From Rebecca billardiae RCC1528 (lineage: Eukaryota; Protista; Haptophyta), in NCBI GenBank assembly GCA_965240325.2, contig OZ251222.1, positions 4,216,001 through 4,280,000 of the forward strand: a stretch of 64,000 nt of DNA. Reading direction: 5' to 3'. The notes under the pieces were generated by a model. That model had not been told where the DNA came from. It was given only the letters and a program-made list of their open reading frames with translations, and searched no databases. Below, piece after piece: positions 44,901 through 64,000 of this stretch. Every line of letters begins with the position of its first letter. The first letter of the stretch is position 1. The position numbers and the translations under genes are program-made.

Positions 44901-47202
44901 ACGGCGGCGGCGACGGCGGCGGCGACGGCGGTGGCGCGGGTGGCGACGGCGGCGGGAACGGCTCCGCGCGCGGCGGCGGCGGTGGCAGCGGCGGCGGCGA
45001 TGGTGGCGGGCTTGGTGGTGGCGACGGCGGTGGCGACGGCGGTGGCGACGGTGGTGGCGGCGATGGCGGCGGGCTCGGCGGTGGAGCTGGCGGCAGCACT
45101 GGGGGTGGGCTGGGTGGCGGGCTCGGTGGCGGGCTGGGCGGCGGCGGGCTCGGCGGTGGCGATGGCGGTGGACTCGGCACGGGCGACGGCGGCGGAGACG
45201 GCGGTGGACTCGGCGGCGGGGAACGCGCGCCTGCCGGCGGCGGCGGGCTCGGCGGCGGGCTCGGCGGCGGGCTCGGTGGATCCAACGGCGGCGGTGACGG
45301 CGGTGGCGTGGGTGGTGGCGACGGCGGGGGCGAAGGCGGTGGTGACGGCGGGGGCACAGGCAGCGGCGGTGGCGGGCTCGGCGGTGGTGAGGGCGGGGGC
45401 GAGGGTGGCAGCCCCGGCGGTGGGCTGGGTGGCGGGGCTGGTGGCGTTGACGGGGGCGGACTCGGTGGCGGGCTCGGTGGTGGCGACGGCGGTGGTGCTG
45501 GCGGCGGCGGGCTCGGCGGTGGGCTCGGCGGTGGCACTGGCGGCGGGCTCGGCGGCGGAGCTGGCGGCGGAGCTGGCGGTGGCGACGGAGGGGGCGATGG
45601 CGGCGGCGCCGGCGGCGAAGGCGGAGGAAATGGCTCCGCACGTGGCGGCGGAGGCGGCTGGGGTGGAGGCGATGGCGGCGGGCTCGGAGGTGGCGATGGC
45701 GGCGGTGACGGCGGCGGCGAGGGCGGCGGCGGCGACGGCGGCGGCGACGGCGGTGGTGAGGGCGGCGGGGCAGGCGGCGGCGAGGGCGGCGGGCTCGGTG
45801 GCGGGCGAGGCGCGCTCGGCGGAGGGGAAGGTGGTGGCGACGGCGGCGGCGAGGGCGGCGGCGAGGGCGGTGGCGACGGCGGTTGCTGTGGTGGGCTCGG
45901 CGGGGGCGACGGCGGTGGCGACGGCGGGACCGTGGGCGGCGGGGATGGCGGCGGTGACGGCGGCGGCGAGGGCGGCGGGCTCGGTGGCGGTGTCGGCGGC
46001 GGCAACGGCGGTGGTGAGGGCGGCGGGGCAGGCGGCGGCGAGGGCGGCGGGCTCGGTGGCGGGCGCGGCGCGCTCGGCGGAGGGGACGGTGGTGGCGAGG
46101 GCGGCGGCGAGGGCGGCGGCGAGGGCGGCGGCGAGGGCGGCGGCTGTGGTGGGCTCGGCGGGGGCGACGGCGGTGGCGCCGGCGGCACCGTGGGCGGTGG
46201 GGAAGGCGGCGGGGATGGCGGTGACGAGGGCGGCGGGCTCGGTGGCGGTGTCGGCGGCGGCGACGGCGGCGGCGAAGGCGGCGGCGACGGGGGTGGGCTC
46301 GGCGGCGGCACGGGCGGCGGCACGGGCGGCGGTGGGCTCGGCGGCGGGCTCGGCGGCGGCACTGGCGGCGGGCTAGGCGGTGGGCCGGGTGGCGAACTCG
46401 GCGGCGGCGAAGGCGGTGGCGTCGGGGGCGAAGAAGGCGGCGGGCTGGGAGGCGGGAGCGGCGGCGGCGCTGGCGGTTGCGAGGGCGGTGGCGGGCTGGG
46501 CGGCGGCCGCGGGGGCGGGCTGGGCGGCGGCGAGGGCGGGGGCGTCGGCGGCGGCGAGGGCGGTGGCGAGGGCGGCGGCAACGGGGGAGGGCTCGGCGGA
46601 GGCGCGGGCGGCGGGCTCGGCGGCGGCAAGGGTGGCGGCGCCGGCGGTGGGCTTGGTGGTGGGCTCGGCGGCGGCTTCGGCGGCGACGGCGGCGGGAACG
46701 GCTCCGCGCGCGGCGGTGGTGGCGGCTGCGGCGGCGGCGACGGAGGCGGGCTCGGAGGCGGAGAGGGCGGCGGGGCCGGGGGCGGCGAAGGCGGCGGTGA
46801 GGGCGGCGGCGAGGGCGGGGGCAGCGGTGGCGACGGTGGCGGCGACGGTGGCGGCGAGGGCGGCGGGCTGGGCGGCGGGCTGGGCGGCGGTGCCGGGGGT
46901 GGCGCCGGTGGCGGGCTTGGCGGCGGCGAGGGCGGTGGGCTCGGCGTCGGCGAGGGCGGCGGGCTGGGCGGCGGGCTGGGCGGCGGTGACGGCGGCGCCG
47001 ATGGGGGTGGGCTCGGTGGCGGGCTTGGCGGTGGCGCCGGTGGCTGCGCTGGGGGCGGGCTGGGCGGCGGGCTGGGCGGCAATGAAGGTGGCGGTGAGGG
47101 CGGCGGCGAGGGCGGCGGCGGGCTCGGCGGTGGCGACGGTGGCGGTGACGGCGGCGGCGACGGCGGCGGCAGGGGTGGGGGGATTGGTGGCGGGCTCGGC
47201 GG
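1..47202 (-). CDS. Continuation of the same giant SPPP-rich protein including globular module B; ~15,700 codons, 3'-partial
   Basis: All plus-strand Gly-frame shadow ORFs from 14870 to 35867 share one phase and all Ala-frame shadow ORFs from 12 to 41589 share the next, so the minus Pro frame is unbroken. The ORF track has no terminated ORF in this frame below 51286 despite many in-frame GTG codons, implying no stop before the left edge. Manual translation of 21565-25800 gives a paralog of module A in this frame. Confidence 0.85.
10051..18043. repeat. Coding tandem array with an exact 888-bp (296-aa) period, 9 intervals
   Basis: Anchor gaacggct at 10051, 10939, 11827, 12715, 13603, 14491, 15379, 16267, 17155, 18043. 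Confidence 0.9.
21727..21902. repeat. 176-bp near-perfect direct repeat of 59111-59286
   Basis: Base-by-base comparison shows one mismatch (21860 c vs 59244 t); offset 37,384 bp. Confidence 0.9.
22012..22185 (-). other. Dockerin-like domain, module B
   Basis: GDVSGDAVLTSYDVRVLSQYVAG…LDPTLDGSTSAGDVLYLLLAVAG. Confidence 0.7.
22345..22743 (-). other. Cohesin-like domain 2, module B
   Basis: GSTVSVPVRIHTGSAAVYAYNFQIEIEIDSAALLASAC…LVTIVG…VGTVTFSV; the G.tVsVPV start is typical of cohesins. Confidence 0.55.
23700..25540 (-). other. TMEM132-like ectodomain core, module B
   Basis: SASC…GECAASVPSGWFS; LRVWVPL…TLHPISG…C…FQS…VDVT; LLSAEG…YAALSDGSV; GYLLEA…GCGAALASG. Confidence 0.6.
24800..25200 (-). 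other. Cohesin-like domain 1, module B
   Basis: AVFPGDTLDVALSAHTGGFALKAFQLSASYNASYLSFVS…ALITLTLRL. Confidence 0.6.
28600..38400. repeat. Higher-order coding duplications, three copies with offsets of ~3.2 and ~4.1 kb
   Basis: Unique markers recur: aacgggatcacgcg at ~28847, ~32027, ~36143; ggttgaggaggtggcgcc at ~30509 and ~34649; ggagcctccggt at ~29039, ~32219, ~36335. Confidence 0.8.
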
Positions 47203-47203
47203 G

Positions 47204-50200
47204 TGGCGATGGTGGCGGCGAGGGCGGAGATGGCGGCGGGAAGGGCTCAGCACGGGGCGGCGGCGGCGGGGCCGGCGGCGGCGAGGGCGGCGGGCTCGGC
47301 GGCGGCGAGGGCGGCGGCGAGGGCGGCGGCGAGGGCGGCGGCGGCGAGGGCGGCGGGCTCGGCGGCGGCGAAGGCGGCGGCGAGGGCGGTGGCTGCGGCG
47401 GTGACGCCGGCGGCGAGGGCGGTGGGGGCGAGGGCGTGGGTGGTGGCGGCAGCGGCGGCGCCGAGGGCGGCTTCGGCGGGCCGGGCGGCGGGGACGGGCT
47501 GGCCGGTGGCGGGCTGGGCGGCGGCGATGGCGGTGGCGACGGCGGCGGTCCGGGGCTTGGCGGTGGGCTGGGAGGTGGGCTGGGAGGTGGTAGGGGTGGC
47601 GGCGACAGCGGTGGTGGCGGGCTGGGCGGCGGGCTGGGTGGCGGGCTGGGCGGCGGCTGGCTCGGTGGCGGCGACGGAGGCGGGCTCGGCGGCGGCAAAG
47701 GCGGTAGCGACGGCGGCGGCAGCGGCGGCGGCGACGGCGGCGGGGTCGGCGATGCCGGCGGCGGGCTCGGTGGCGGCCGAGGCAGCGGAGGCGGTGGGCT
47801 TGGCGGTGGCGACGGTGGCGGCAGTGGCGGCGGCGGCCGCGGCGGCGGGCTCGGCGGCGGCAATGGCGGCGGCGATGGCGGCTCGCTCGGCGGCGGTGGC
47901 GATGGCTGCGGCGGCGGTGGCGGCGGGAAAGGCACTACACGCGGTGGCGGCGGCGGCGCTGGCGGTGGTGACGGCGGTGGCGACGGCGGCGGCGATGGCG
48001 GCGGTGCAGGCGGCGGCGAGGGCGGCGGCGAGGGCGGTGGGAGGGGCGGCGACGGTGGCGGGCTCGGCGGCGGCAGCGGCGGCGGCGGCGACGGTGCGGG
48101 CGGCGGCGGCGGTGGGAACGGGATCGTGCGCGGCGGCGGCGGCGGTGTTGGCGGTGGGGACGGCGGCGGCGACGGCGGTGGCGTCGGTGGGGACGGCGGA
48201 GGCGACGGCGGCGGGCTGGGTGGCGGCGAGGGCGGCGGCAGCGGCGGTGACGGTGGCGGGCTTGGCGGCGGCAGTGGCGGCGGCGGCGACGGTGCGGGCG
48301 GCGGCGGCGGTGGGAACGGGATCGTGCGCGGCGGCGGCGGCGGTGTTGGCGGTGGGGACGGCGGTGGCGACGGCGGCGGCGAGGGAGGCGGTGCCGGTGG
48401 CGTCGGCGGGCTTGGCGGCGGGCTCGGCGGTGGCGAAGGCGGCGGCGACGGTGGCAATGGCGGCGGGTATGGCTCGGCGCGCGGTGGCGGCGGCGGCAGC
48501 GGCGGCGGAGACGGCGGTGGGCTTGGCGGCGGCAAGGGGGGTGGCGTGGGCGGGGTCAATGGCGGCGGTGGGCTCGGCGGCGGCGAAGGCGGAGGAGACG
48601 GCGGCAAATGCGGCGGCGGCGAAGGAGGCGGCGAGGGTGGGGGGCTGGGCGGCGGCGATGGCGGAGGTGATGGCGGCGGGCGCGGGACGCCAGTCGGCGG
48701 CGGGGACGGCGGTGGGCTCGGCGGAGGCGACGGCGGCGGACTCGGCGGCGGGGACGGTGGCGGGCTCGGCGGAGGCGATGGCGGCAGCCGCGGCGGCGGC
48801 GACGGCGGCGGGCTTGGCGGTGGGCTGGGCGGCGGCGTGGGCGGAAGCGGGTTCGGCGGCGGGCTCGGCGGCGGCGACGGTGGCGGGCTCGGCGGTGGGG
48901 ACGGTGAGGGCAAGGGCGGTGGAGACGGCGGCGGCACGGGCGGCGGGCTCGGCGGTGGGCGCGGCGGCGGCGGGGACGGTGGCGGGCGCGGCGGTGGCGA
49001 CGGTGGCGGCACGGGCGGCGGGCTTGGCGGCGGCGCCGGAGGTGGGCTCGGCGGCGGCGAGGGCGGCGGAGCGGGTGGCAACGGCGGCGGGAACGGCTCA
49101 GCCCGTGGCGGCGGCGGCGGCAGGGGCGGTGGCGACGGAGGTGGGCTCGGCGGCGGCGAGGGCGGTGGCGAGGGCGGAGGTGTTGGCGGCGGCGGGCTCG
49201 GGGGCGGGCTCGGCGGTGGCGCCGGCGGCGCGCCCGGCGGCGGCGAGGGCGGCGGGCTCGGTGGCGGGCCTGGCGGCGGCGGGCTCGGCGGCGGGCTCGG
49301 CGGTGGGCTCGGCGGCGGGCTGGGCGGCGGGCTCGGCGGCGGGCTCGGCGGCGGGCTCGGCGGCGGACTGGGCGGCGACGAGGGCGGTGGCGAAGGTGGC
49401 GGGCTCGGCGCGTCCGCGGGTGGTGGGCTCGGCGGCGGGCTTGGCGGTGGGCTCGGCGGCGGGGATGGCGGCGGGCTGGGCGGCACCGACGGTGGCGGCG
49501 AGGGCGGCGGCAACGGCGGCGGAGGGCTCGGTGGCGGACTCGGCGGAGGGCTCGGTGGCGGCGAGGGCGGCGGCGAGGGCGGCGGCGAGGGCGGCGGGCT
49601 CGGAATGCCAGCAGGCGGCGGGCTCGGTGGCGGGCTCGGCGGAGGCGATGGCGGCGGGCTCGGCGGCGGCGACGGTGGCGGGCTCGGCGGAGGCGACGGC
49701 GGTGGGCTCGGCGGCGGCGACGGTGGCGGGCTCGGCGGAGGCGATGGCGGCGGCAAGGGCGGTGGAGACGGCGGCGGCACGGGCGGCGGGCTCGGCGGTG
49801 GGCGCGGCGGCGGTGGGGACGGTGGCGGGCTCGGCGGTGGCGACGGCGGCGGCACGGGCGGCGGGCTTGGCGGCGGCGCCGGAGGTGGGCTCGGCGGCGG
49901 CGAGGGCGGCGGAGCGGGTGGCAACGGCGGCGGGAACGGCTCAGCCCGTGGCGGCGGCGGCGGCAGGGGCGGTGGCGACGGAGGTGGGCTCGGCGGCGGC
50001 GAGGGCGGTGGCGAGGGCGGAGGTGTTGGCGGCGGCGGGCTCGGGGGCGGGCTCGGCGGTGGCGCCGGCGGCGCGCCCGGCGGCGGCGAGGGCGGCGGGC
50101 TCGGTGGCGGGCCTGGCGGCGGCGGGCTCGGCGGCGGGCTCGGCGGTGGGCTCGGCGGCGGGCTGGGCGGCGGGCTCGGCGGCGGGCTCGGCGGCGGGCT

Positions 50201-53200
50201 CGGCGGCGGATTGGGCGGCGACGAGGGCGGTGGCGAAGGTGGCGGGCTCGGCGCGTCCGCGGGTGGTGGGCTCGGCGGCGGGCTTGGCGGTGGGCTCGGC
50301 GGCGGGGATGGCGGCGGGCTGGGCGGCACCGACGGTGGCGGCGAGGGCGGCGGCAACGGCGGCGGAGGGCTCGGTGGCGGACTCGGCGGAGGGCTCGGTG
50401 GCGGCGAGGGCGGCGGCGAGGGCGGCGGCGAGGGCGGCGGGCTCGGAATGCCAGCAGGCGGCGGGCTCGGTGGCGGGCTCGGCGGAGGCGATGGCGGCGG
50501 GCTCGGCGGCGGCGACGGTGGCGGGCTCGGCGGAGGCGACGGCGGTGGGCTCGGCGGCGGCGACGGTGGCGGGCTCGGCGGAGGCGATGGCGGCGGCAAG
50601 GGCGGTGGAGACGGCGGCGGCACGGGCGGCGGGCTCGGCGGTGGGCGCGGCGGCGGTGGGGACGGTGGCGGGCTCGGCGGTGGCGACGGCGGCGGCACGG
50701 GCGGCGGGCTTGGCGGCGGCGCCGGAGGTGGGCTCGGCGGCGGCGAGGGCGGCGGAGCGGGTGGCGACGGCGGCGGGAACGGCTCAGCCCGTGGCGGCGG
50801 CGGCGGCAGGGGCGGTGGCGACGGAGGTGGGCTCGGCGGCGGCGAGGGCGGTGGCGAGGGCGGAGGTGTTGGCGGCGGCGGGCTCGGGGGCGGGCTCGGC
50901 GGTGGCGCCGGCGGCGCGCCCGGCGGCGGCGAGGGCGGCGGGCTCGGTGGCGGGCCTGGCGGCGGCGGGCTCGGCGGCGGGCTCGGCGGTGGGCTCGGCG
51001 GCGGGCTGGGCGGCGGGCTCGGCGGCGGGCTCGGCGGCGGGCTCGGCGGCGGGCTGGGCGGCGACGAGGGCGGTGGCGAAGGTGGCGGGCTCGGCGCGTC
51101 CGCGGGTGGTGGGCTCGGCGGCGGGCTTGGCGGTGGGCTCGGCGGCGGGGATGGCGGCGGGCTGGGCGGCACCGACGGTGGCGGCGAGGGCGGCGGCAAC
51201 GGCGGCGGAGGGCTCGGTGGCGGACTCGGCGGAGGGCTCGGTGGCGGCGAGGGCGGCGGCGAGGGCGGCGGCGAGGGCGGCGGGCTCAGAATGCCAGCAG
51301 GCGGCGGGCTCGGTGGCGGGCTCGGCGGAGGCGATGGCGGCGGGCTCGGCGGCGGCGACGGTGGCGGGCTCGGCGGAGGCGACGGCGGTGGGCTCGGCGG
51401 CGGCGACGGTGGCGGGCTCGGCGGAGGCGATGGCGGCGGCAAGGGCGGTGGAGACGGCGGCGGCACGGGCGGCGGGCTCGGCGGTGGGCGCGGCGGCGGT
51501 GGGGACGGTGGCGGGCTCGGCGGTGACGACGGCGGCGGCACGGGCGGCGGGCTTGGCGGCGGCGCCGGAGGTGGGCTCGGCGGCGGCGAGGGCGGCGGAG
51601 CGGGTGGCGACGGCGGCGGGAACGGCTCAGCCCGTGGCGGCGGCGGCGGCAGGGGCGGTGGCGACGGAGGTGGGCTCGGCGGCGGCGAGGGCGGTGGCGA
51701 GGGCGGAGGTGTTGGCGGCGGCGGGCTCGGGGGCGGGCTCGGCGGTGGCGCCGGCGGCGCGCCCGGCGGCGGCGAGGGCGGCGGGCTCGGTGGCGGGCCT
51801 GGCGGCGGCGGGCTCGGCGGCGGGCTCGGCGGTGGGTTCGGCGGCGGGCTGGGCGGCAAGCTCGGCGGCGGGCTCGGCGGCGGGCTCGGCGGCGGACTGG
51901 GCGGCGACGAGGGCGGTGGCGAAGGTGGCGGGCTCGGCGCGTCCGCGGGTGGTGGGCTCGGCGGCGGGCTTGGCGGTGGGCTCGGCGGCGGGGATGGCGG
52001 CGGGCTGGGCGGCACCGACGGTGGCGGCGAGGGCGGCGGCAACGGCGGCGGAGGGCTCGGTGGCGGACTCGGCGGAGGGCTCGGTGGCGGCGAGGGCGGC
52101 GGCGAGGGCGGCGGCGAGGGCGGCGCGCTCGGAATGCCAGCAGGCGGCGGGCTCGGTGGCGGGCTCGGCGGAGGCGATGGCGGCGGGCTCGGCGGCGGCG
52201 ACGGTGGCGGGCTCGGCGGAGGCGACGGCGGTGGGCTCGGCGGCGGCGACGGTGGCGGGCTCGGCGGAGGCGATGGCGGCGGCAAGGGCGGTGGAGACGG
52301 CGGCGGCACGGGCGGCGGGCTCGGCGGTGGGCGCGGCGGCGGTGGGGACGGTGGCGGGCTCGGCGGTGGCGACGGCGGCGGCACGGGCGGCGGGCTTGGC
52401 GGCGGCGCCGGAGGTGGGCTCGGCGGCGGCGAGGGCGGCGGAGCGGGTGGCGACGGCGGCGGGAACGGCTCAGCCCGTGGCGGCGGCGGCGGCAGGGGCG
52501 GTGGCGACGGAGGTGGGCTCGGCGGCGGCGAGGGCGGTGGCGAGGGCGGAGGTGTTGGCGGCGGCGGGCTCGGGGGCGGGCTCGGCGGTGGCGCCGGCGG
52601 CGCGCCCGGCGGCGGCGAGGGCGGCGGGCTCGGTGGCGGGCCTGGCGGCGGCGGGCTCGGCGGCGGGCTCGGCGGTGGGCTCGGCGGCGGGCTGGGCGGC
52701 GGGCTCGGCGGCGGGCTCGGCGGCGGGCTCGGCGGCGGACTGGGCGGCGACGAGGGCGGTGGCGAAGGTGGCGGGCTCGGCGCGTCCGCGGGTGGTGGGC
52801 TCGGCGGCGGGCTTGGCGGTGGGCTCGGCGGCGGGGATGGCGGCGGGCTGGGCGGCACCGACGGTGGCGGCGAGGGCGGCGGCAACGGCGGCGGAGGGCT
52901 CGGTGGCGGACTCGGCGGAGGGCTCGGTGGCGGCGAGGGCGGCGGCGAGGGCGGCGGCGAGGGCGGCGGGCTCGGAATGCCAGCAGGCGGCGGGCTCGGT
53001 GGCGGGCTCGGCGGAGGCGATGGCGGCGGGCTCGGCGGCGGCGACGGTGGCGGGCTCGGCGGAGGCGACGGCGGTGGGCTCGGCGGCGGCGACGGTGGCG
53101 GGCTCGGCGGAGGCGATGGCGGCGGCAAGGGCGGTGGAGACGGCGGCGGCACGGGCGGCGGGCTCGGCGGTGGGCGCGGCGGCGGTGGGGACGGTGGCGG

Positions 53201-56200
53201 GCTCGGCGGTGGCGACGGCGGCGGCACGGGCGGCGGGCTTGGCGGCGGCGCCGGAGGTGGGCTCGGCGGCGGCGAGGGCGGCGGAGCGGGTGGCGACGGC
53301 GGCGGGAACGGCTCAGCCCGTGGCGGCGGCGGCGGCAGGGGCGGTGGCGACGGAGGTGGGCTCGGCGGCGGCGAAGGCGGTGGCGAGGGCGGAGGTGTTG
53401 GCGGCGGCGGGCTCGGGGGCGGGCTCGGCGGTGGCGCCGGCGGCGCGCCCGGCGGCGGCGAGGGCGGCGGGCTCGGTGGCGGGCCTGGCGGCGGCGGGCT
53501 CGGCGGCGGGCTCGGCGGTGGGCTCGGCGGCGGGCTGGGCGGCGGGCTCGGCGGCGGGCTCGGCGGCGGGCTCGGCGGCGGACTGGGCGGCGACGAGGGC
53601 GGTGGCGAAGGTGGCGGGCTCGGCGCGTCCGCGGGTGGTGGGCTCGGCGGCGGGCTTGGCGGTGGGCTCGGCGGCGGGGATGGCGGCGGGCTGGGCGGCA
53701 CCGACGGTGGCGGCGAGGGCGGCGGCAACGGCGGCGGAGGGCTCGGCGGCGGACTCGGCGGAGGGCTCGGTGGCGGCGAGGGCGGGGGTGATGGCGGCGG
53801 GCTCGGAGCGCCGGCCGGTGGCGGTGACGGTGGCGGGCTCGGCGGAGGCGACGGTGGCGGCATGGGTGGCGGGCTTGGTGGTGGCGATGGAGGCGGCACG
53901 GGCGGCGGCGGCGAGGGTGGCGGGCTCGGCGGTGGTGATGGCGGCGGCACGGGGGGCGGGTTGGGCGGAGGCGACGGCGGAGGGCTCGGTGGCGGTGATG
54001 GCGGCGGCTCTGGCGGCGAAGGCGGCGGGAACGGCTCCGCCCGAGGCGGAGGCGGTGGCGCGGGCGGCGGCGAGGGCGGTGGGCTTGGCGGTGGCGAGGG
54101 TGGCGGCGAGGGCGGCGGGGACGGCGGCGGCGGCGACGGCGGCGGTGCGGGCGGTGGTGACGGCGGCGGCACAGGTGGCGGCTGTGGCGGCGGGCTCGGC
54201 GGCGGCTGCGGCGCGCTGGGTGGCGGCGACGGCGGCGGCGACGGCGGCGGCGACGGGGGCGGCAGAGGCGGCGGCGACGGGGGCGGCAGAGGCGGGCTCG
54301 GCGGTGGGCTCGGCGGCGGGCTCGGCGGCGGCGATGGCGGTGGCGCAGGCGGCGGCGCTGGCGGCGGCGAGGGCGGCGGTGCTGGCGGCGGCGAGGGCGG
54401 CTGACCCGGGGGTGGGCTCGGAGGTGGGTTGGGCGGTGGCGAGGGCGGCGGGCTCGGGACGCCCGCCGGCGGTGGGCTCGGCGGTGGGCTCGGCGGTGGC
54501 GACGGCGGTGGCGCTGGCGGCAGGGACGGCGGTGGGCTCGGCGGCGGCGACGGTGGCGGGCCCGGCGGCGGCGACGGCGGTGGCGACGGGGGCGGCGGGG
54601 ACGGTGGCGGGCTTGGTGGCGGCAATGGAGGCGGCACCGGCGGCGAACGCGGCGGCGGCGACGGTGGTGGCGACGGCGGCGGGCTCGGTGGCGGCGCCGG
54701 CGGCGCCGGCGGCGGGAAGGGCAATGCGCGCGGAGGCGGCGGCGGCAGGGGCGGCGACGACGGAGGCGGGCTCGGCGGCGGCGAGGGTGGCGGTGAGGGC
54801 GGTGGTGTGGGCGGCGGCGGGCTCGGCGGCGGGCTCGGCGGCGGCGCCGGCGGCGCGCTCGGCGGCGGCGAGGGCGGCGGGCTCGGTGGCGGGCTCGGCG
54901 GTGGCGGGCTCGGCGGCGGTGACGGCGGGGGGCTTGGCGGCGGGCGCGGCGCGGCGGGTGGCGGCGACGGAGGTGGGCTTGGCGGTGGCGAGGGTGGCGG
55001 GGATGGCGGCGGCGACGGCGGAGCGGACGGTGGCGGCGACGGCGGCGGCAATGGCGGGGGCGAAGGCGGGGGCGAAGGTGGCAGGCTTGGCGGCGGCGAG
55101 GGCGGCGGGCCGGGCGAGCCTGTGGGTGGAGGGCTGGGCGGGGGGCTGGGCGGCGGCACGGGTGGCGGAGACGGTGGCACCGCCGGCGGTGGGCTCGGTG
55201 GTGGCGTCGGCGGCGGCGTCGGCGGCTGCGCCGGCGGCGGGCTCGGCGGCGGGCTCGGCGGCGGCGCTGGCGGCGGAGGGCTCGGTGGCGGCGACGGTGG
55301 AGGCGCCGGGGGCGATGATGGCGGCGGCGACGGCGGTGGCCGCGGCGGCGGGCTCGGCGGCGGGCTCGGCGGCGGCGAGGGTGGCAGCGACGGCGGCGGC
55401 GACGGCGGAGGCACGGGCAGCGGCGGAGGCGGGCTCGGCGGTGGCGACGGCGGCGGCGCGGGCGGCGGGCTCGGCGGCGGCAAAGGCGGACGCGACGGTG
55501 GGGGCGGCGACGGAGGCGGCGCGGGCGGCGGTGAGGGCGGCGGCGACGGCGGCGGCGACGGCGGCGGCGATGGTGGCGGGCTCGGCGGCGGGCTCGGGGG
55601 CGGCGCGGGCGGCGACGGCGGCGGGAAGGGCAATGCGCGCGGAGGCGGCGGCGGCAGGGGCGGCGGCGACGGAGGCGGGCTCGGCGGCGGCGATGGCGGC
55701 GGCGACGGTGGCGGCGCCGGCGGCGGCGGCGAGGGCGGCGGCGAGGGCGGCGGCAATGGCGGCGGCGACGGCGGTGGCGAAGGCGGTGGGCTCGGCGGCG
55801 GCTGCGGCGATCGGGGCGGCGGGGACGGCGGAGGCGACGGCGGTGGTGAGGGCGGTGGAGACGGCGGCGGTGAGGGTGGCGGCAGCGGTGGGCTCGGCGG
55901 CGGCGAGGGCGGCGGCGAGGGCGGCGGGCTCGGTGGCGGTTGCGGTGGCGTCGACGGCGGCGGCGACGGCGGCGGATGCGGTGGTGGCGACGGCGGAAGG
56001 CTTGGCGGTGGCGACGGCGGCGGCGACGGCGGTGGTGAGGGCGGTGGGCTCGGAGGCGGCTGCGGCGATCGGGGCGGCGGGGACGGCGGAGGCGACGGCG
56101 GTGGTGAGGGCGGTGGAGACGGCGGCGGTGATGGTGGCGGCAGCGGTGGGCTTGGCGGTGGCGATGGTGGCGGCGCCGGCGGCGGGCTCGGCGGCGGGCT

Positions 56201-59200
56201 CGGCGGCGGGCTCGGCGGCACGCTTGGCGGTGGGCTCGGAGGTGGCGCTGGCGGCTGCAGCGGCGGCGGGCTCGGGGGCGGCAGAGGTGGCGGCAGAGGC
56301 GGTGGTGGGCTCGGCGGCGGCGAAGGCGGTGGTGAGGGCGGCGGCGACGGCGGTGGGCTCGGCGGTGCCGCCGGCGGCGGCGAAGGTGGCGGCGAGGGCG
56401 GCGGCGAGGGTGGCGGTGAGGGTGGCGGCGAGGGCGGTGGCAGGGGCGGCGGAGGCGAGGGTGGTGGCGAAGGCGGCGGGCTCGGCGGCGGCGCTGGCGG
56501 CGGCGATGGCGGCGGCACCGGCGGCAGCGCGGGCGGCGGGCTCGGCGGCGGCGAGGGCGGTGGGCTCGGCGGCGGGCTCGGCGGCGGGCTCGGCGGCGAC
56601 GGTGGCGGGAATGGCTGGGTGCGAGGCGGGGGCGGCGGGAGCGGCGGCGGCGAGGGCGGCGGGGACGGCGGCGGCGAGGGCGGTGGGCTCGGTGGGGGCG
56701 ACGGTGGTGGGCTCGGCGGCGGCGAGGGCGGCGGGGACGGCGGCGGTGACGGTGGCGGGCTCGGCGGCGGCGAGGGCGGCGGCAAGGGCGGCGGCGAGGG
56801 CGGCGGTGGCGAGGGCGGCGGGCTCGGCGGCGGCGAGGGCGGCGGCGAAGGCGGCGGCTGCGGCGGCGACGCCGGCGGCGAGGGCGGTGGGGGCGAGGGC
56901 GTGGGTGGTGGCGGCAGCGGCGGCGCCGAGGGCGGCTTGGGCGGGCCGGGCGGCGGGAACGGGCTGGCGGGCGGCGGGCTGGGCGGCGGCGATGGTGGCG
57001 GCGAGGGCGGCGGTTCGGGGTGCGGCGGCGGGCTGGGCGGCGGGCTCGGCGGCGGGCTGGGCGGCCGCGGCTGCGGCGGCGGTGGGCTCGGTGGCGGCAA
57101 GGGCGGCGGGCTCGGCGGCGGGCTCGGCGGCGGGCTCGGGGGCGGCGACGGCGGCGGCGACGGCGGTGGGCTCGGCGGTGGGCCAGGCGGCGGCGACGGC
57201 GGCGGCGACGGCGGTGGGCTCGGCGGCGGGCTCGGCGGCGGGCTCGGCGGCGGCGACGGCGGTGGGCTCGGCGGTGGCGGCAGCGGCGGCGGGCTCGGCG
57301 GCGGCGACGGCGGCGGTGCCGGCGGTGGGACAGGCGGCGGCGGCGACGGCTGGGGTGGCGGCGGCGGCGGGAACGGGATCGTGCGCGGTGGTGGCGGCGG
57401 GTTCGGCGGCGGGCTCGGCGGCGGCGACGGCGGCGGCATCGGCGGCGGCGATGGCGGCGACGAAGGCGGCGGCGATGGCGGCGGCGAGGGCGGCGGCGAG
57501 GGCGGCGGCGTGGGCGGTGGCGAAGGCGGCGGCGTGGGCGGCGACGGCGGCGGGCTTGGCGGCGGCAGCGGTGGTGGCGGCGACGGCTGGGGTGGCGGCG
57601 GCGGCGGGAACGGGATCGTGCGCGGTGGTGGCGGCGGTGCTGGCGGCGGCGACGGTGGCGGCGACGGCGGTGGCGTCGGCGGCGACGGCGGCGGCGACGG
57701 CGGCGGGCTCGGCGGCGGCGACGGCGGCGGCAGCGGTGGCGACGGCGGCGGGCTCGGCGGCGGCAGCGGCGGGGGTGGCGAGGGTGCCGGTGGCGGCGGC
57801 GGCGGGAATGGGATCGTGCGCGGCGGCGGAGGCGGTGCGGGCGGCGGCGACGGTGGCGGCGCCGGCGGCGGCGAGGGCGGCGGCGGCGAGGGCGGCGGTG
57901 CGGGCGGCGACGGGCTCGGCGGCAGGCCCGGCGGCGGCGACGGCGGTGGCGACGGCGGAGGCATCGGCGGCGGCGAGGGCGGTGGCGAGGGGGGCGGCGA
58001 GGGGGGCGGCGAGGGCGGTGGTGAGGGCGGCGGCGAGGGCGGCGGGCTCGGCGGCGGCGACGGCGGCGGCGACGGCGGCGACGGCGGCGGGAACGGCTCC
58101 GCGCGCGGCGGCGGCGGCGGCAGCGGCGGCGGCGAGGGCGGCGGGCTCGGTGGCGGCGAGGGCGGCGGCGACGGCGGAGGCGTGGGCGGTGGCGGCGAGG
58201 GCGGCGGCGCGGGCGGCGGCGGCGAGGGCGGCGCAGACGGCGGCGGCGAGGGCGGCGGGCTCGGCGGCGGGCTCGGCGGCGGGCTCGGGTTGCCGACTGG
58301 CGGCGGGCTCGGCGGCGGGCTCGGCGGCGGCGACGGCGGCGGCGACGGCGGCGGCGCCGGCGGCGCGCTCGGCGGCGGGCGCGGCGGCGGGCGCGGCGGC
58401 GGGCGCGGCGGCGGGCTCGGCGGCGGAGACGGAGGTGGCGGGGACGGCGGCGGAGAAGGCGGCGGGGACGGCGGCGGGGACGGCGGCGGGGACGGCGGCG
58501 GGCTCGGCGGCGGGCTCGGCGGCGGCGAGGGCGGCGGGCCCGGAGCGCCGGCCGGCGGCGGGCTCGGCGGCGGCGAGGGCGGCGGCAAGGGCGGCGGGCT
58601 CGGCGGCGGGCGCGGCGGCGCGCGCGGCGGCGGGCTCGGCGGCGGCGCCGGCGGCGGCGGGCTGGGCGGCGGGCTCGGCGGCGGCGACGGCGGCGGGCTC
58701 GGCGGCGGCGTCGGCGGCGGTGCCGGCGGCGGCGACGGCGGCGGCGCCGGCGGTGGGCTCGGCGGCGGGCTGGGCGGCGGCGCCGGTGGCGGGCTCGGCG
58801 GCGCGCCGGGCGGCGGGCTCGGCGGCGGGCTCGGCGGCGGCGCGGGCGGCGCGGCCGGCGGCGGCGAGGGCGGCGGGCTGGGCGGCGGGCTGGGCGGCGG
58901 GCTGGGCGGCGGGCTGGGCGGCGGCGCGGGCGGCGGCGGCAGCGGCGGCCCCGCCACCGTCGCGCTGAGCAGCGGCTCGAACGTGAAGGCGAAGCCGTCA
59001 TAGAAGGCGGCGGACGAGCCGAGGAACGGGAAGTTGCGCTCGTCGCCGCCGACGCCGAGCGCGTCCGTCGTCTCGACCATCACGGCGACGCCGAACGCGC
59101 CGCTCAGCGCGGGCCAGCCGCCGCTCGGGTACACGCCGAGCGTGAAGACGCCGTCCGCGTAGCTCGCGCGCCCCACCCAGTAGCCCTGCGTCGAGGTGCC

Positions 59201-62200
59201 GTTGTCGGTGCCGTTCACGTACACGGGCGTGTACGACGCGGCGTCCATCTCGACCTCGAACAGCACCGCCGTCTGCGAGTCGTCGGCGGTGGCGCCGTCG
59301 TCGCTCGTCACGACGACCGAGACGACGAGCGGCTCGGTGCTGCCCAGCACCGGCGCGCTCGTGATGTTGTAGCTCGCGAGGAAGCGGTACTTCCCCGCGA
59401 CGGCGCGCAGCAGGTACTGCACGTCCTGCGCGCTCGGCGTGCCGTCGAGCGTCGGGTCGAGCGCGGACGCGCACGCGCTCACGTCCGAGCCGACGACGAG
59501 CTGCGCGAGGACGCGCACGTCGAACGAGGTGAAGGCGCAGTCGCCGTTCACGTCGCCCACCACCGCCGCGTCGCACCCCGCGCACGAGGACAGCCGGCGC
59601 CGCGCGCCGCGCCGCTCCGCCGCGCGGCGCGCGCTCGCGCGGTGGGCGCGCGGCGCGCGCGCGGCCTCGAGCTCGAGCAGCGCGCGCCGCCGCCGGCTGA
59701 CGGTGGTGGTGAGCCCGCCCACGCCCGCGAAGATGGGCACGTCGGTGACGCGCGTCTCGGTCTCGCCCAGCAGCGTGACGAGCTCGACGACCGTGCCGCT
59801 CAGCTCCGTGCTCGCCGCGCCGAGCACGTCGAAGAGGACCGTGCCCACGTTTGCCAGCTGGCCGCTCGTCGTGAGCGAGTCGGTGTTGCCCGCGATCCGC
59901 ACGGTCTCGAGCGGGTCGTTGATCGTGCACACGGCCCAGGAGAGCGTGGTGCACGAGGCCGCGCGGAGGACGGACGAGTCGAGCGCGATCTCGATCTGGA
60001 AGTTCACCAGGTACTCCGAGACGCCGCCCGTGTTGACGAGGACGTCGACGCTCACGCCGCTGCCCGACTGCACGAGCTGCAGCCCGCTGCTCGAGCCGAG
60101 GTCGACGTCGTACTGCGCGGGGCGCAGGTTGGCGGTGACGTCGAGCGTGTCCGAGACGGCGCCCGCGTCGCGCGAGGTGGCGGTGATCACGTTCGCGCCG
60201 TTGCGGCTGTTCCCCGCGATCGTGAGCACGCCGTCAGCGCCCACGCGCACCACGGCCGGGTCGTCCGAGCCCCAGTCCAGCAGCTGCGCCGAAGGCACGT
60301 ACGACAGCGAGAGCAGGTCGGCGTAGGCCACGCCGTCCGCGAGCGTGGCCGCGGCGGCCAGCGAGACGGAGGTGCCGTTGATCCCGTTGAGCAACGCGCC
60401 GGACGTCGAGCCGTACAGGCTGAGCGTGAGCGACGTGAGCTGCACCGGCATGTCGCTCACGAGCGCGAGCGCGGACGCAGAGGTCGAGCCCCACGTGGCG
60501 GTGATGAGCGCCGCGCCCGCCCCGACGCCGACGACGGTCGCCCCGCTGAGCGTCGCGACGGACGTGTCGTTCGAGGCGATGCTCATGTACGGGCCGAGGC
60601 CCGAGACGGCGGTGCCGTCGGTCAGCGCGGCGCTGGTCGTGGTGCCCGAGCGCTGGAACGCTGAGGACGCGCCGATCCGTCCGAGCTCCGCGTCCGCGAG
60701 CGTGATCGCCATGGCCGTGGCGTACAGCACGCGCACCTCCGCCCAGCCGCTCAAGCCGAAGGAGGGCACGGCGGCGCTCACGTTGAACGCGGCGCAGCTC
60801 GCGCCGGACGCGACGCTGATCGTCGCGCTCGGCGCGTCGAGCGTGGCGCAGTCGGTCGACGTGCCGCCGAGCGTGAGGTTGGTGCGCGCGTCTGCGCTGA
60901 AGTCCGCCTCCGAGCCGTCCGCAAAGTGGACCGTGACGGTGGCGGTGGTCGAGGTGGGAAGCGAGACGGGCGCGCCCGCGGCGGAGTCGCCCGGCGCGGC
61001 GAGGCGCGCGGTGGCGGTGCTCACGACGAGCGAGGTCGCGGCGGGCAGCGCGATCTCCACGCGCGCGCGCCCGGTCGCCAGCGTGCTGTTGCATGAGTCC
61101 CTCCACACCGCCTCGAGCAGCTCGCCCGCGGCCGAGCTCGCGCCCGTGGCGACGGTGGCGCTCCACGGCGCGTCGGCCGAGGCGGGCGCGCTCACGGTGA
61201 GGCTCGGCGTCCGGCTGCTGAGCGTGAGCGCGTCGGACGGGACGCGCTCCACCGAGCCATCGCCGAGGTACGCGTACGCGTACACGCTCAGCGCCTGCCC
61301 CTCGGCGCTCAGCGCCTGCGAGAGCTGCACGGCCGCGTCGAACGCGGCGCTGGACGCGCCGAGCTCCGTCGGCGGCTGCGCGACAAACGACGCGGCGCTG
61401 AACGCGACCGGCCGCAGCGAGGCGACGAGGCGCTGCACCGCGGTGGAGACGACGACGCTTGCGCGCACGCTGCCGCGCGCGCTTGACACGACCACCTCCG
61501 TCGAGCCCACGCCCACGCCGCTCACCGTCGCCACGCCGGTCGTGGCCGACTGGCTGACGCTCGCGACCGCCGCGTCCGCGCTCGCGAGCGCGGTGCGCGC
61601 GGTCACGTCCACGCCGCTCACCGTGCCCAGCCCCTCGCCGCCGAACGCGGCGACGACGCTCGCCGTGCCCGACTGAAAGGCCTGCGCGCCGCACGCGCCC
61701 GGCTGCGACGCGCCCTTGATTGCGTACAGCGTGCCTCGCTCCAGCACGAGCTCGGCGGACAGCGGGTACCACACGCGCAGCGGCACGCTCGCCACGACGG
61801 CGCCGCTCGACTCGTCGGTCACGTTCACGAGCGTCCCCGCCGCGCCGGCCGTGTGCGACGCGCCCGCGACGAGCGTGCACGGCGAGCCCGTCTCGACCGC
61901 GAGCACCGCCGCGTCGAGCGCCGCGCAGCCGTACCCTTGGGTCGCGTACGCCGACGCGGTGGCCGCCCTCGAGTAGAGCTCGAGCACGGAGAGCGCGGCG
62001 CTCGCGTTGGCGCCGCCGAGCGGGGCGTCGTTGAGCAGCTCGCCCGCGTCCACCCACGCTTGCACCGCGCCGACGGAGACCGCCTCGACGCCGAGCGTGC
62101 CCGTCGCGGCCGCGCCGTCGTCCGCGCCCGCCACCACGCCCGCGCTGTCTGAGAGGTACGCGTTGCTCGCAGCGTTCACGTACTGCACGACGCGGCACGA

Positions 62201-63298
62201 GAGCGCGGCCGCGTGCGAGCCGGGCGGCGCGTCCGCGCGCACGGCGAGCGTGAGCGTGATGAGCGGCACCGCGGCGCCCGTCACGTCCGCCTCGGACGTG
62301 CCGCCCGTCAGCCCGGACGCCACGACGCCGAGCGTGCCCACGCCGTCGTCGTTGAGCGTGGGCGAGTTGTACGTGCTCGCCACCGCGCTCGCGCTCACGC
62401 CCAGCAGGCTCGCGTTGTACGACAGCTCGACCTGCCACGTGCTGAGCGCCGCGCCGCCCGTGTGCGCGTACAGCACGAGCTCGAACGAGTCGCCCGCGAA
62501 GATGGGCGACTTGGCCATCTGCGCGAGCAGCCCGACGGAGGGCAGCGTGTACGCCGTCGGCGCCTTGGCAAGCGTGATCGCGCCCGCGGCCTCGCACGAG
62601 CCCGCGTTGCCGCCGCCGTCGTACGAGAAGTCGACGCGCGCGCTGAGCGTGCGCGCGGCGCTGTCGCTGAACCACGCGGCGTCGAGCGTCGCGCTGCACT
62701 CGCCCACGCCGCTGCTCGAGCCGGGCATCCCGCACGAGGACTGCGCGCTCTCCGAGCCGCCGTCGAGCGAGAGTGTGAGCAACACGCCCAGCCCGCTGCT
62801 CGTCACCTGCGAGCGCTGCGCCTCGTCGCGCATCTGGTAGTTGACGCGCGCGTCGAGGCGGTCGACGTACAGCACGGCGGTGCGCGGCACGCAGCTCACG
62901 CTCGCCGCCTGCTGCGCGACCAGCGTGAAGCCGGCGCTCGCCACGCCCAGGTCGATGCCGTGCGACGACGCGCGGACCGTGCCCGCGTCGCCCTTGGTCG
63001 CGCCCGCAAAGAAGCCCACGCTCACGTTGTGGAAGCTGCCCGCGCTGCTCGCCGAGCCGTGCAGCGGCAGGCCTGGGCTGCCCGCCGCCGGGTAGAGCGT
63101 CAGCAGCGCGCCCTCGACCAGGTCGGCCGCGTCGAAGGCGAACGGCGGCAGCGGCGGCGAGGGCGGCGAGGGCGGCGGGTGCGGCAGCGTGCGCGGCGGC
63201 GGCGGGCTCGGCGGCGACGGCGGCGGGGCCGGCGGCGGCGGGCTCGGCGGCGGCGACGGTGGCGGCGACGGCGGCGGCGACGGCGGCGGCTGCGGGAA

Positions 63299-63329
<31 letters not shown>

Positions 63330-64000
63330 GGCGGCGGGCTCGGCGGCGGGCTCGGCGGCGGGCGCGGCGGCGGGCTGGGCGGTGGAAGCGGCGGCGGCGG
63401 TGCCGGCGGTGGGGATGGCGGCGGCGAGGGCGGCGGGCTGGGCGGCGGCGAGGGCGGCGGCGAGGGTGGCGGGAACGGAGGCGGCGGCGAGGGCGGCGGC
63501 GAGGGCGGCGGCGAGGGCGGCAGCGTGGGAGGCGGGCTCGGCGGCGGGTGTGGTGGTGGCGGCGCCGGCGGTGGCGACGGTGGCGGCGATGGAGGCGGGC
63601 TGGGCGGCGGCGAGGGCGGCGGCGAGGGCGGCGGCGCGGGTGGCGGCGGCGAGGGCGGCGGCGAGGGCGGCGGCGAGGGCGGCGGCGAGGGCGGCGGCGA
63701 CGGCGGCGGCGGCGAGGGCGGCGGCGAGGGCGGTGGCGAGGGCGGCGGCGCAGGCGGCGGCGCAGGCGGCGGTGACGGCGGCGGCGACGGCGGCGGGCTC
63801 GGCGGAGGCGACGGCGGAGGGCTCGGCGGTGGCGGGCTTGGCGGCGGCGAGGGTGGTGGCGAGGGCGGCGGCGAGGGCGGCGGGCTCGGTGGGGGCGGGC
63901 TCGGCGGCGGAGCCGGTGGTGGCGAGGGCGGCGCCGCCGGCGGTGGCGACGGTGGCGGGCGTGGCGGCGGCGACGGCGGCGGGCTCGGAGGCGGCGACGG
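47204..64000 (-). CDS. Giant SPPP-rich (extensin/HRGP-like) extracellular protein with TMEM132-like/cohesin/dockerin module A; upstream segment, 5'-partial
   Basis: Corresponds to ORF 46373..63025(-). The frame continues upstream of the called GTG (…SPPLPPFAFDAADLVEGALLTLYPAAGSPGLPLHGSASSAGSFHNVSVGFF…) and through SPPP repeats to the right edge. Contains a normal-looking globular domain with strong GC3 codon bias. The Pro-rich reading ends at a 1-nt indel at 47201-47203. Confidence 0.9.
48860..53800. repeat. Near-identical coding tandem array, ~6 x 843 bp (281 aa)
   Basis: Anchor gaacggctcagcccgt at 49091, 49934, 50777, 51620, 52463, 53306; the translated units (…AGIP…ADAP…GAPP…RAEPF…) differ at only a few residues. 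Confidence 0.92.
59393..59557 (-). other. Dockerin-like domain, module A
   Basis: GDVNGDCAFTSFDVRVLAQLVVG…LDPTLDGTPSAQDVQYLLRAVAG: two Dx[N/T]xDx6D loops, each followed by an amphipathic helix, as in dockerin type I. Confidence 0.7.
59725..60113 (-). other. Cohesin-like domain 2, module A
   Basis: GSGVSVDVLVNTGGVSEYLVNFQIEIALDSSVLRAASC…TVRIAG…VGTVLFDV. Confidence 0.55.
61052..62900 (-). other. TMEM132-like ectodomain core, module A
   Basis: Motifs recalled from TMEM132 proteins occur in order: SC…GECSATLDAAWFS, a cohesin-like domain, LRVWYPL…TLYAIKG…C…FQS…VDVT, L…EGQ…YAYLGDGSV…LTLSS, and GELLEA…C…TLATG. Confidence 0.6.
62130..62540 (-). other. Cohesin-like domain 1, module A
   Basis: PIFAGDSFELVLYAHTGGAALSTWQVELSYNASLLGV…LGVVASG…PLITLTLAV matches the cohesin pattern (GdtftV.v…i.g.q..l.YD..lL…l.tltF.v). 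Confidence 0.6.

Follow-up and report, generated by a model that had tools for sequence, protein, structure and literature searches.

TMEM132-type ectodomain cores as repeated internal modules of a proline-rich reading frame in the haptophyte Rebecca billardiae

Introduction

Whether the extracellular core of the animal TMEM132 adhesion proteins also exists in algae, or is only imitated there by common immunoglobulin (Ig)-like folds, is the question raised by a stretch of 64,000 nucleotides from the haptophyte Rebecca billardiae RCC1528 (NCBI GenBank assembly GCA_965240325.2, contig OZ251222.1, positions 4,216,001 to 4,280,000). This stretch, referred to as the window and used as the frame of all coordinates given below, encodes on its minus strand two paralogous globular modules, A and B, that are embedded in long Ser-Pro3 (SPPP) repeats. 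A first-pass annotation had described in them a TMEM132-like ectodomain, used as a repeated internal module of a probably non-animal hydroxyproline-rich glycoprotein (HRGP), with no following transmembrane helix and next to a dockerin-like domain, and had proposed that the ancestral partner of the TMEM132 cohesin was a dockerin. The origin of the TMEM132 architecture has been placed in early holozoans, no dockerin is detectable in vertebrates, and the coherin, hedgling and lefftyrin cadherins of choanoflagellates and sponges embed the five-domain TMEM132 core in much larger extracellular proteins (Sanchez-Pulido & Ponting 2018, PMC6030884). This paper was the only one found when the literature was searched for work linking TMEM132 with dockerin or algae.

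Domain order and sequence evidence

Profile searches and structure prediction support the view that the flagged stretches, taken as a whole, share ancestry with the TMEM132 ectodomain core, which encompasses an Ig-like conserved region, a cohesin and three bacterial Ig-like (BIG)-type domains. In module B (58967..63145, minus strand, as are all features of the reading frame described here), a globular cassette of ~1,393 residues with a 100% open frame, the residues of which are numbered from the codon at 63025, the domains were placed as follows. The conserved region, an Ig-like beta-sandwich at the position of the second TMEM132 domain, encompasses residues ~37-156 (62558..62917) and matches macroglobulin and filamin Ig domains at Z ~9.8. 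It is followed by cohesin 1 at the position of the third (cohesin-like) TMEM132 domain (residues 162-316, 62078..62542), by the fourth domain, which is the first BIG domain (PF16070; residues 323-421, 61763..62059) and carries C367 and C383, by the equivalent of the fifth domain (PF23486; residues ~422-533, 61427..61762) with the boundary strand P-L-R-V-W-x-P-L-S and C445, and by the equivalent of the sixth domain (PF23487; residues ~534-660, 61046..61426) with C645.

The modules were scanned against Pfam individually and at the level of the family. PF16070 (Ig_TMEM132_4th) matched the corresponding piece of module B at 33.5 bits (E 4.1e-8), above its curated cut-off of 27 bits, and scored 26.3 bits (E 7e-6), just below that cut-off, when the whole module was scanned. 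The scan of module A returned PF16070 (E 2e-4), a weak match to the sixth-domain family PF23487 (E 0.039) and Dockerin_1 (E 0.0035). For the family-level test, 60 relatives were cut into sub-regions and each member was scanned against Pfam. Ig_TMEM132_4th matched 57 of the 60 in the fourth-domain sub-region (best E 1e-20), and the sub-region comprising the fifth and sixth domains was matched by Ig_TMEM132_5th in 25 relatives (best 3.5e-14), by Ig_TMEM132_6th, moderately, in 13 (best 1.2e-4) and by the generic Big_2 in five. The sub-region comprising the conserved region and cohesin 1 was matched by Ig_TMEM132_2nd (PF23481) in four relatives (best 3.7e-4), by TMEM132_3rd (PF23039) in three (best 1.6e-3) and, at cohesin 1, by Pfam Cohesin in 18 (best 3.5e-7). 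Every other family matched at most one member. The models of the second to sixth TMEM132 domains were, with Cohesin, the leading specific Pfam matches of their sub-regions, and they lay in TMEM132 order.

Six cysteines are conserved at 93-100% in the family: two in the conserved region (C98 in 60/60 and C110 in 59/60 relatives), two placed 16 residues apart in the fourth domain (C367 and C383), one early in the fifth (C445) and one late in the sixth (C645), these last four being kept in 93-98% of the sequences. The disulphides predicted for TMEM132 comprise one within BIG1 and one that joins the a-b loop to the f-g loop between BIG2 and BIG3 (Sanchez-Pulido & Ponting 2018, PMC6030884). Compared with this published description by domain position, the cysteine pattern read from the algal sequences fits the predicted TMEM132 topology.

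Structure prediction and shape searches

A model of residues 1-790 of module B was computed with AlphaFold2 (AF2) from the 60-sequence alignment, yielding an all-beta structure with a mean predicted local distance difference test score (pLDDT) of 92.4 and a predicted template modelling score (pTM) of 0.77. When the ESM Atlas was searched by shape, the module's own haptophyte cluster ranked first, and three chordate TMEM132 clusters came directly after it. The T132C cluster aligned with 467 residues over residues 1-705 (TM-score 0.49 by query, root-mean-square deviation (rmsd) 5.3 Å), the TMEM132D cluster with 338 residues over residues 177-662 (rmsd 3.5 Å) and the TMEM132C cluster with 295 residues over residues 366-688. 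Bacterial Big_2 arrays ranked after these (TM-score 0.24-0.29, rmsd 6.6-8.3 Å). The Atlas feature search scored a haptophyte PF16070 cluster at 0.95 and a chordate TMEM132 cluster at 0.90. A Foldseek search of the 790-residue model against the PDB, which contains no TMEM132 structure, was used as a negative control and returned only unrelated multi-Ig arrays (TM-score at most 0.23), and no TMEM132 chain was among the solved structures matched by a profile search, which returned only dockerins and chance matches to designed pentatricopeptide repeat (PPR) proteins. The block at residues 162-316, previously described as cohesin-like, proved to be a true cohesin fold, the nine-strand jelly-roll beta-sandwich of that family: an exhaustive VIA-align search aligned 132 of 135 residues with 2vo8_A (Z 14.1, rmsd 2.4 Å), and at least 15 further dockerin-binding cohesins matched it at Z 11-14.

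Several of these results weigh against homology with TMEM132. On module B alone only the fourth domain is significant, the fifth reaching E 0.15 and the second, third and sixth giving no match; the family-level matches to the second and third domains are few and weak; the TM-scores to the TMEM132 models lie below 0.5; and TMEM132_N (PF15705) and TMEM132_C (PF15706) were absent from all Pfam scans of the modules and the 60 relatives. The low TM-scores and the weakness of the second-, third- and sixth-domain matches would also be expected if Big_2 domains and a cohesin had come together independently in an array sharing nothing with TMEM132 beyond common folds, as would the many unrelated Ig arrays found by Foldseek in the PDB and the reach of the algal-family profile to bacterial Big_2 arrays (E 1e-13 to 1e-26). 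The TMEM132-specific models, however, exceed Big_2 (57, 25 and 13 versus 5 of 60 relatives) and do so in TMEM132 order, the three chordate TMEM132 clusters that come right after the module's own cluster have a TM-score roughly double, and an rmsd roughly half, that of the Big_2 arrays, and the six-cysteine pattern accords with the published disulphide topology. Independent assembly is judged very improbable. The likeness to TMEM132 goes beyond generic Ig folds in the PF16070 match above cut-off, the collinear family matches, the cysteines and the ranking of chordate TMEM132 above Big_2 in shape. Profile and structural matches of this kind, the lack of which had been named in advance as telling against the proposal, were found, and the TMEM132 reading stands. 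The protein contains a TMEM132-type ectodomain core and is not a TMEM132 orthologue, because the window encodes neither a transmembrane helix nor a tail, TMEM132_N and TMEM132_C were undetected, and the lineage and the protein context are different.

Second half of the module

Approximately three further Ig-like beta-sandwiches with no named TMEM132 counterpart follow the core at residues ~661-960 (60146..61045). Models were computed for residues 1-790 and 950-1353 of module B, and in the first of these the region is all-beta, with pLDDT above 90 up to residue 770. Residues 532-768 matched the Ig domains of LigA at Z 11.1, and residues 661-768 taken separately reached Z 9.6; no Pfam match was obtained in residues ~661-960 of module B. 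The AF2 model of residues 950-1353 (pLDDT 91.1, pTM 0.88) displayed a confident mutual arrangement of a second cohesin, a dockerin and a terminal domain. Cohesin 2 (residues ~970-1110, 59696..60118) aligned with 2vo8_A over 128 of 135 residues (Z 12.9, rmsd 2.9 Å). Pfam Cohesin matched it in 31 of 62 relatives (best 5e-13), compared with 18 of 60 (best 3.5e-7) at cohesin 1, placing cohesin 2 nearer to the bacterial or canonical cohesins in sequence.

An Arg-rich linker (residues ~1111-1150, 59576..59695) separates cohesin 2 from the dockerin and contains two predicted helices (model residues 162-174 and 178-191), with a loop of pLDDT below 50 at model residues 192-198. It has an equivalent in module A, and its RR-x-L-like strings are conserved in relatives. 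The dockerin (residues ~1157-1209, 59399..59557) consists of two 12-residue Ca-type loops with a predicted helix after each. In both loops and in all 62 of the 62 sequences, positions 1, 3 and 5 are D, N, S or T and position 12 is Asp. Dockerin_1 scored 18 bits on module B (E 0.003), under its cut-off of 22.9, and matched 12 of 62 relatives, and the family profile matched solved clostridial dockerins at E 6e-4. The assignment as a dockerin was made from sequence and predicted helices, the match list of the structure search having been filled by the cohesin. The cassette ends in a terminal beta-sandwich of no named family (residues ~1214-1340, 59006..59386; model strands 266-385, pLDDT ~90-97), which has no Pfam match and is conserved across the 62 relatives.

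The proposal of a dockerin next to the TMEM132-type cohesin was therefore only partly upheld: the dockerin exists, with both its Ca loops conserved, but it does not lie beside that cohesin. It adjoins cohesin 2, following it after ~50 residues, and is ~840 residues away from cohesin 1, which cohesin 2 itself follows at a distance of ~650 residues. This placement bears on a narrower interpretation of the cassette, by which cohesin 2 alone is served by the dockerin, in an intramolecular clasp or a link from bead to bead, and cohesin 1 has a ligand other than a dockerin. We hold this to be a serious possibility, a little short of even. The closer resemblance of cohesin 2 to canonical cohesins, the confident placement of cohesin 2, dockerin and terminal domain in the AF2 model and the lack of a detectable dockerin in vertebrates (PMC6030884) are in its favour, as is the short distance; were it true, the cassette would be uninformative on the partner of animal TMEM132. 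On the other side, both cohesins are equally good shape matches to bacterial dockerin-binding cohesins (Z 14.1 and 12.9), and two cohesins to one dockerin in each bead leave one cohesin free for binding in trans. Judged from sequence and models, the cassette offers a candidate partner for the TMEM132-type cohesin, and the pairing itself is a putative one. The further step, to a dockerin as the ancestral partner of that cohesin, finds no support in these results: the dockerin adjoins the other cohesin, and no holozoan protein with the dockerin half turned up among 30 relatives looked up by name.

Paralogous modules and relatives

Module A (21583..25803) is a paralogous cassette of ~1,407 residues, the TMEM132-like half of which lies at ~23683-25599. 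When module B was searched against the window with tblastn, it aligned with module A over its whole length (1,378 columns, 51.7% identity), the remaining matches being low-complexity noise of 21-27% identity. The alignment bore out the motifs listed in the first-pass annotation, which occur in both modules in identical order: S-C...G-E-C-x-A...W-F-S, the cohesin-like block, P-L-R-V-W-x-P-L-S, T-L-x-x-I-x-G...C-G-x-Q-A-F-Q-S...V-D-V-T, D-G-S-V...L-S-S-R-T-P-S-L and L-L-E-A-x-W-x-D-x-C...L-A-x-G. The ranges originally given for the two copies, 61052-62900 and 23700-25540, correspond to residues ~42-658 of each module and hence to the TMEM132-like half, and ~700 more residues follow. Both modules are fully open over ~4.2 kb each, and all six family cysteines and all dockerin Ca ligands have been kept despite 48% divergence.

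Searching 1.84 billion representatives with a profile made from four cassettes retrieved 3,211 proteins (E<=1e-3), of which 715 had E<=1e-30, and most of the top matches span the profile through the dockerin. Module B aligned end to end with residues 379-1800 of CYMTET_13431 of Cymbomonas tetramitiformis (E 6e-76), in which the full cassette is followed by a transmembrane helix and a tail of ~430 residues, and a word search brought up relatives of full length in Mesostigma and Cymbomonas. Among public proteins, one of Diacronema lutheri comes nearest (45% identity), followed by proteins of Pavlovales sp. CCMP2436 and Prymnesium parvum (33%). Named members at a greater distance belong to the green algae Cymbomonas, Mesostigma and Pedinophyceae, and most other members are metagenomic. 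By best match the nearest relatives are haptophytes and green algae, which agrees with the non-animal host suspected earlier and points to a pavlovophyte-like source, and no holozoan member was found among 30 relatives looked up by name. UniProt automatically names some algal relatives 'TMEM132 fourth domain-containing protein'.

At least 22 of the best 150 relatives have a C-terminal transmembrane helix followed by basic residues. No hydrophobic stretch of transmembrane type was found among the 21,333 residues encoded in the window, beyond both ends of which the gene extends, so that an anchor may lie elsewhere. The statement that no transmembrane helix follows the core consequently holds inside the window but not for the family, where the anchored relatives include CYMTET_13431. 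Many relatives are 6,000-8,000 residues long with 3-7 copies of the cassette. A proline-rich rod of at least 200 residues occurs in only one of the 150 best public relatives, against thousands of rod residues in the window; either the rods are lineage-specific or other gene models end at rods. The family profile that reaches bacteria was built from the algal region that runs from the cohesin to the seventh domain, and the bacterial proteins matched are of Big_2/invasin type (e.g. from Aeromonas media), which is consistent with a BIG-domain ancestry of the Ig domains of the module.

Reading frame and proline-rich rods

The G+C content is 75-86% across the window, with a strong excess of G over C on the plus strand, the exceptions being islands near 21.5-25.8 kb and 59-63 kb. 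On the minus strand, a first frame is open from 64000 to 46376 and a second from 47934 to position 1. The two frames are joined at ~47,200 by a single-base change, across which the Ser-Pro3 reading continues. Read through this point, the window holds 21,333 codons with 63% Pro in one reading that fills it completely. A rod of 285 codons (63146..64000; 74% Pro, 47 SPPP) precedes module B with no stop in between and is cut by the window end. The inter-module rod of ~11,050 residues (25804..58966; 72% Pro, 1,721 SPPP, one Tyr, no Cys) contains the one-base frame change, and the rod of 7,194 residues downstream of module A (1..21582) is cut by the window start. Over all rods there are 2,893 SPPP motifs, the Pro content is 71-74% and the Ser content 17-18%, and two Tyr and no Cys occur in 18,532 residues. 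CCG is the dominant codon, and the G+C content at third codon positions is 0.98 in the modules. A polyproline II helix extends by 0.31 nm per residue; if fully extended in this form, the inter-module rod would measure ~3.4 µm and the rod cut by the window start at least 2.2 µm.

Ser-Pro3 repeats lead in frame into each module by way of a conserved junction and resume after the module. The junction, ~40 residues at 63,026-63,145 and 25,684-25,803, runs from P-P-S-P-P-S-P-P-L-P-P-(F/W)-x-F to N-V-S-V-G-F-F-A, and it is recognisable in Cymbomonas CYMTET_13431 just before residue 379. Neither rod-module junction contains a stop, an ATG or a signal peptide. Because the modules are joined in frame to the upstream rods in this manner, with rods on both sides and two paralogues present, the earlier description as a repeated internal module is confirmed. 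That each module might be the start of a separate gene was considered and rejected, as neither an ATG nor a signal peptide is found and the frame carries on from the upstream rod without a break. Very long open reading frames rich in Ala, Gly or Arg, on the plus strand and in alternate frames (e.g. 47203..58968 and 25833..31163, both plus strand), were likewise not taken as genes, being composition artefacts of CCG/GGC repeats.

At ~47,190-47,210 the SPPP motifs pass from the frame of 64000, upstream, to that of 47199, downstream. Were the frame change real, the first frame would extend for ~275 further Ala-rich codons up to the stop at 46376. The change looks more like an assembly error of homopolymer type. 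Within the rod, five near-identical higher-order units of 843 nucleotides (281 codons), each with the punctuation motif P-R-A-E-P-F-P-P-P, lie at 49,101-53,312 and indicate recent tandem amplification or a repeat-assembly artefact.

Two features of the locus speak against a single long coding frame: the frame change at ~47,200 interrupts the reading, and in sequence as GC-rich as this, composition alone yields long open frames. The coding status of the rods rests for the latter reason on their frame continuity with the modules. The tract could on these grounds be a decaying or mis-assembled repeat, its giant frame produced by composition and by repeat collapse or expansion and its modules mere relics, and the frame change, the near-identical 843-nucleotide units, the thousands of codons open also in alternative frames, the long proline rod in only one of 150 public relatives and a look-up that listed no RNA or DNA run for the module can all be cited for this. 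Set against it, both ~4.2-kb modules have stayed fully open, with cysteines and Ca ligands intact, at a divergence of 48%, the SPPP frame on either side carries on into them by way of the conserved junction, and one shift of homopolymer type within 64 kb of CCG repeats has the expected look of an assembly error. A decaying or mis-assembled tract is considered improbable.

Discussion

The locus is best explained, and we think with good probability, as part of one giant minus-strand gene for an extracellular Ser-Pro3 thread that bears two beads, each comprising a TMEM132 core, cohesins and a dockerin. The product would be secreted or surface-exposed, the rods acting as extended, probably glycosylated spacers with putative hydroxylation and glycosylation, and the beads as presumed adhesion or assembly nodes on the glycosylated rod. 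The HRGP label given earlier agrees with the Ser-Pro3 repeats and is to that extent retained, as a presumptive one, since the Tyr cross-link motifs of extensins are absent from the rods. The dockerin may engage a cohesin in a Ca-dependent manner, either cohesin 2 in cis or the cohesin of another bead or molecule in trans, and threads would thereby be joined into a meshwork at the surface or fastened to a partner. If cohesin 2 were clasped in cis, cohesin 1 might stay free for trans binding, there being two cohesins and one dockerin in each bead.

For the TMEM132 field, the five-domain core is found also outside animals, repeated in a haptophyte and present in a large family of haptophytes and green algae, which widens its known range. 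That one chain holds this core together with a second cohesin and a dockerin with conserved Ca loops provides a testable candidate for the ligand of the TMEM132-type cohesin. The locus further points to an undescribed algal surface fibre in which micrometre-long polyproline rods would bear adhesion beads. As public databases already label some algal proteins automatically with the fourth-domain name, the advance made here is confirmation and anatomy, and not a first sighting.

On a wider and more doubtful interpretation, the TMEM132 ectodomain could be the one half that is left of an ancient cohesin-dockerin adhesion cassette of eukaryotes, older than the divergence of the haptophyte/green-plant and holozoan lineages. 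Animals would then have kept the conserved region, the cohesin and the three BIG domains on a membrane anchor and have lost the other half, with cohesin 2 and the dockerin. In human TMEM132 the orphan cohesin would trace back to a module that bound a dockerin, and the algal pair could serve as a guide to its ligand site.

Comparison with known systems

The module and the animal proteins TMEM132A-E have the same ectodomain order, from the conserved Ig-like region through the cohesin to three BIG-type Ig domains, with a compatible cysteine pattern, and the single-pass membrane form of TMEM132 occurs in some algal relatives. In contrast to animal TMEM132, the core in the window is internal, repeated and flanked by Ser-Pro3 rods on the micrometre scale. 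It is accompanied in each module by ~700 extra residues (three Ig-like domains, cohesin 2, dockerin and beta-sandwich), is followed in the window neither by a transmembrane helix nor by a cytoplasmic tail of the kind that bears PP1 (RVxF) and WIRS motifs in TMEM132, lacks detectable TMEM132_N and TMEM132_C, and comes from an algal host, whereas the published origin is early holozoan. By their description, the premetazoan coherin, hedgling and lefftyrin likewise carry the TMEM132 core as a module of a larger extracellular protein; they pair it with cadherin repeats, whereas the algal protein pairs it with Ser-Pro3 rods, cohesin 2 and a dockerin.

Bacterial cohesin-dockerin pairs are resembled in the two cohesin folds (Z 12.9-14.1) and in a dockerin of ~55 residues with two Ca-type loop-helix units, but here the host is eukaryotic, cohesins and dockerin reside in one chain and the dockerin scores under the Pfam cut-off. 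Unlike a bacterial cellulosome, the algal chain contains no enzymes or carbohydrate-binding modules. The long Ser-Pro3 repeats of the rods recall the Ser-Pro(3-5) repeats that mark the extensin-type HRGPs of plants and green algae, from which the rods differ in the lack of Tyr cross-link motifs and in their extreme length. Public algal cassette proteins differ from the protein in the window in that most are without long proline rods and several end in a transmembrane helix and cytoplasmic tail. The closest counterparts are among them: Prymnesium parvum KAL1521827.1, Diacronema lutheri KAG8459670.1, Cymbomonas CYMTET_13431 and Mesostigma viride Mv00404 (45% identity for the Diacronema protein, 28-33% for those of Prymnesium, Cymbomonas and Mesostigma) carry the full cassette, collinear through the dockerin.

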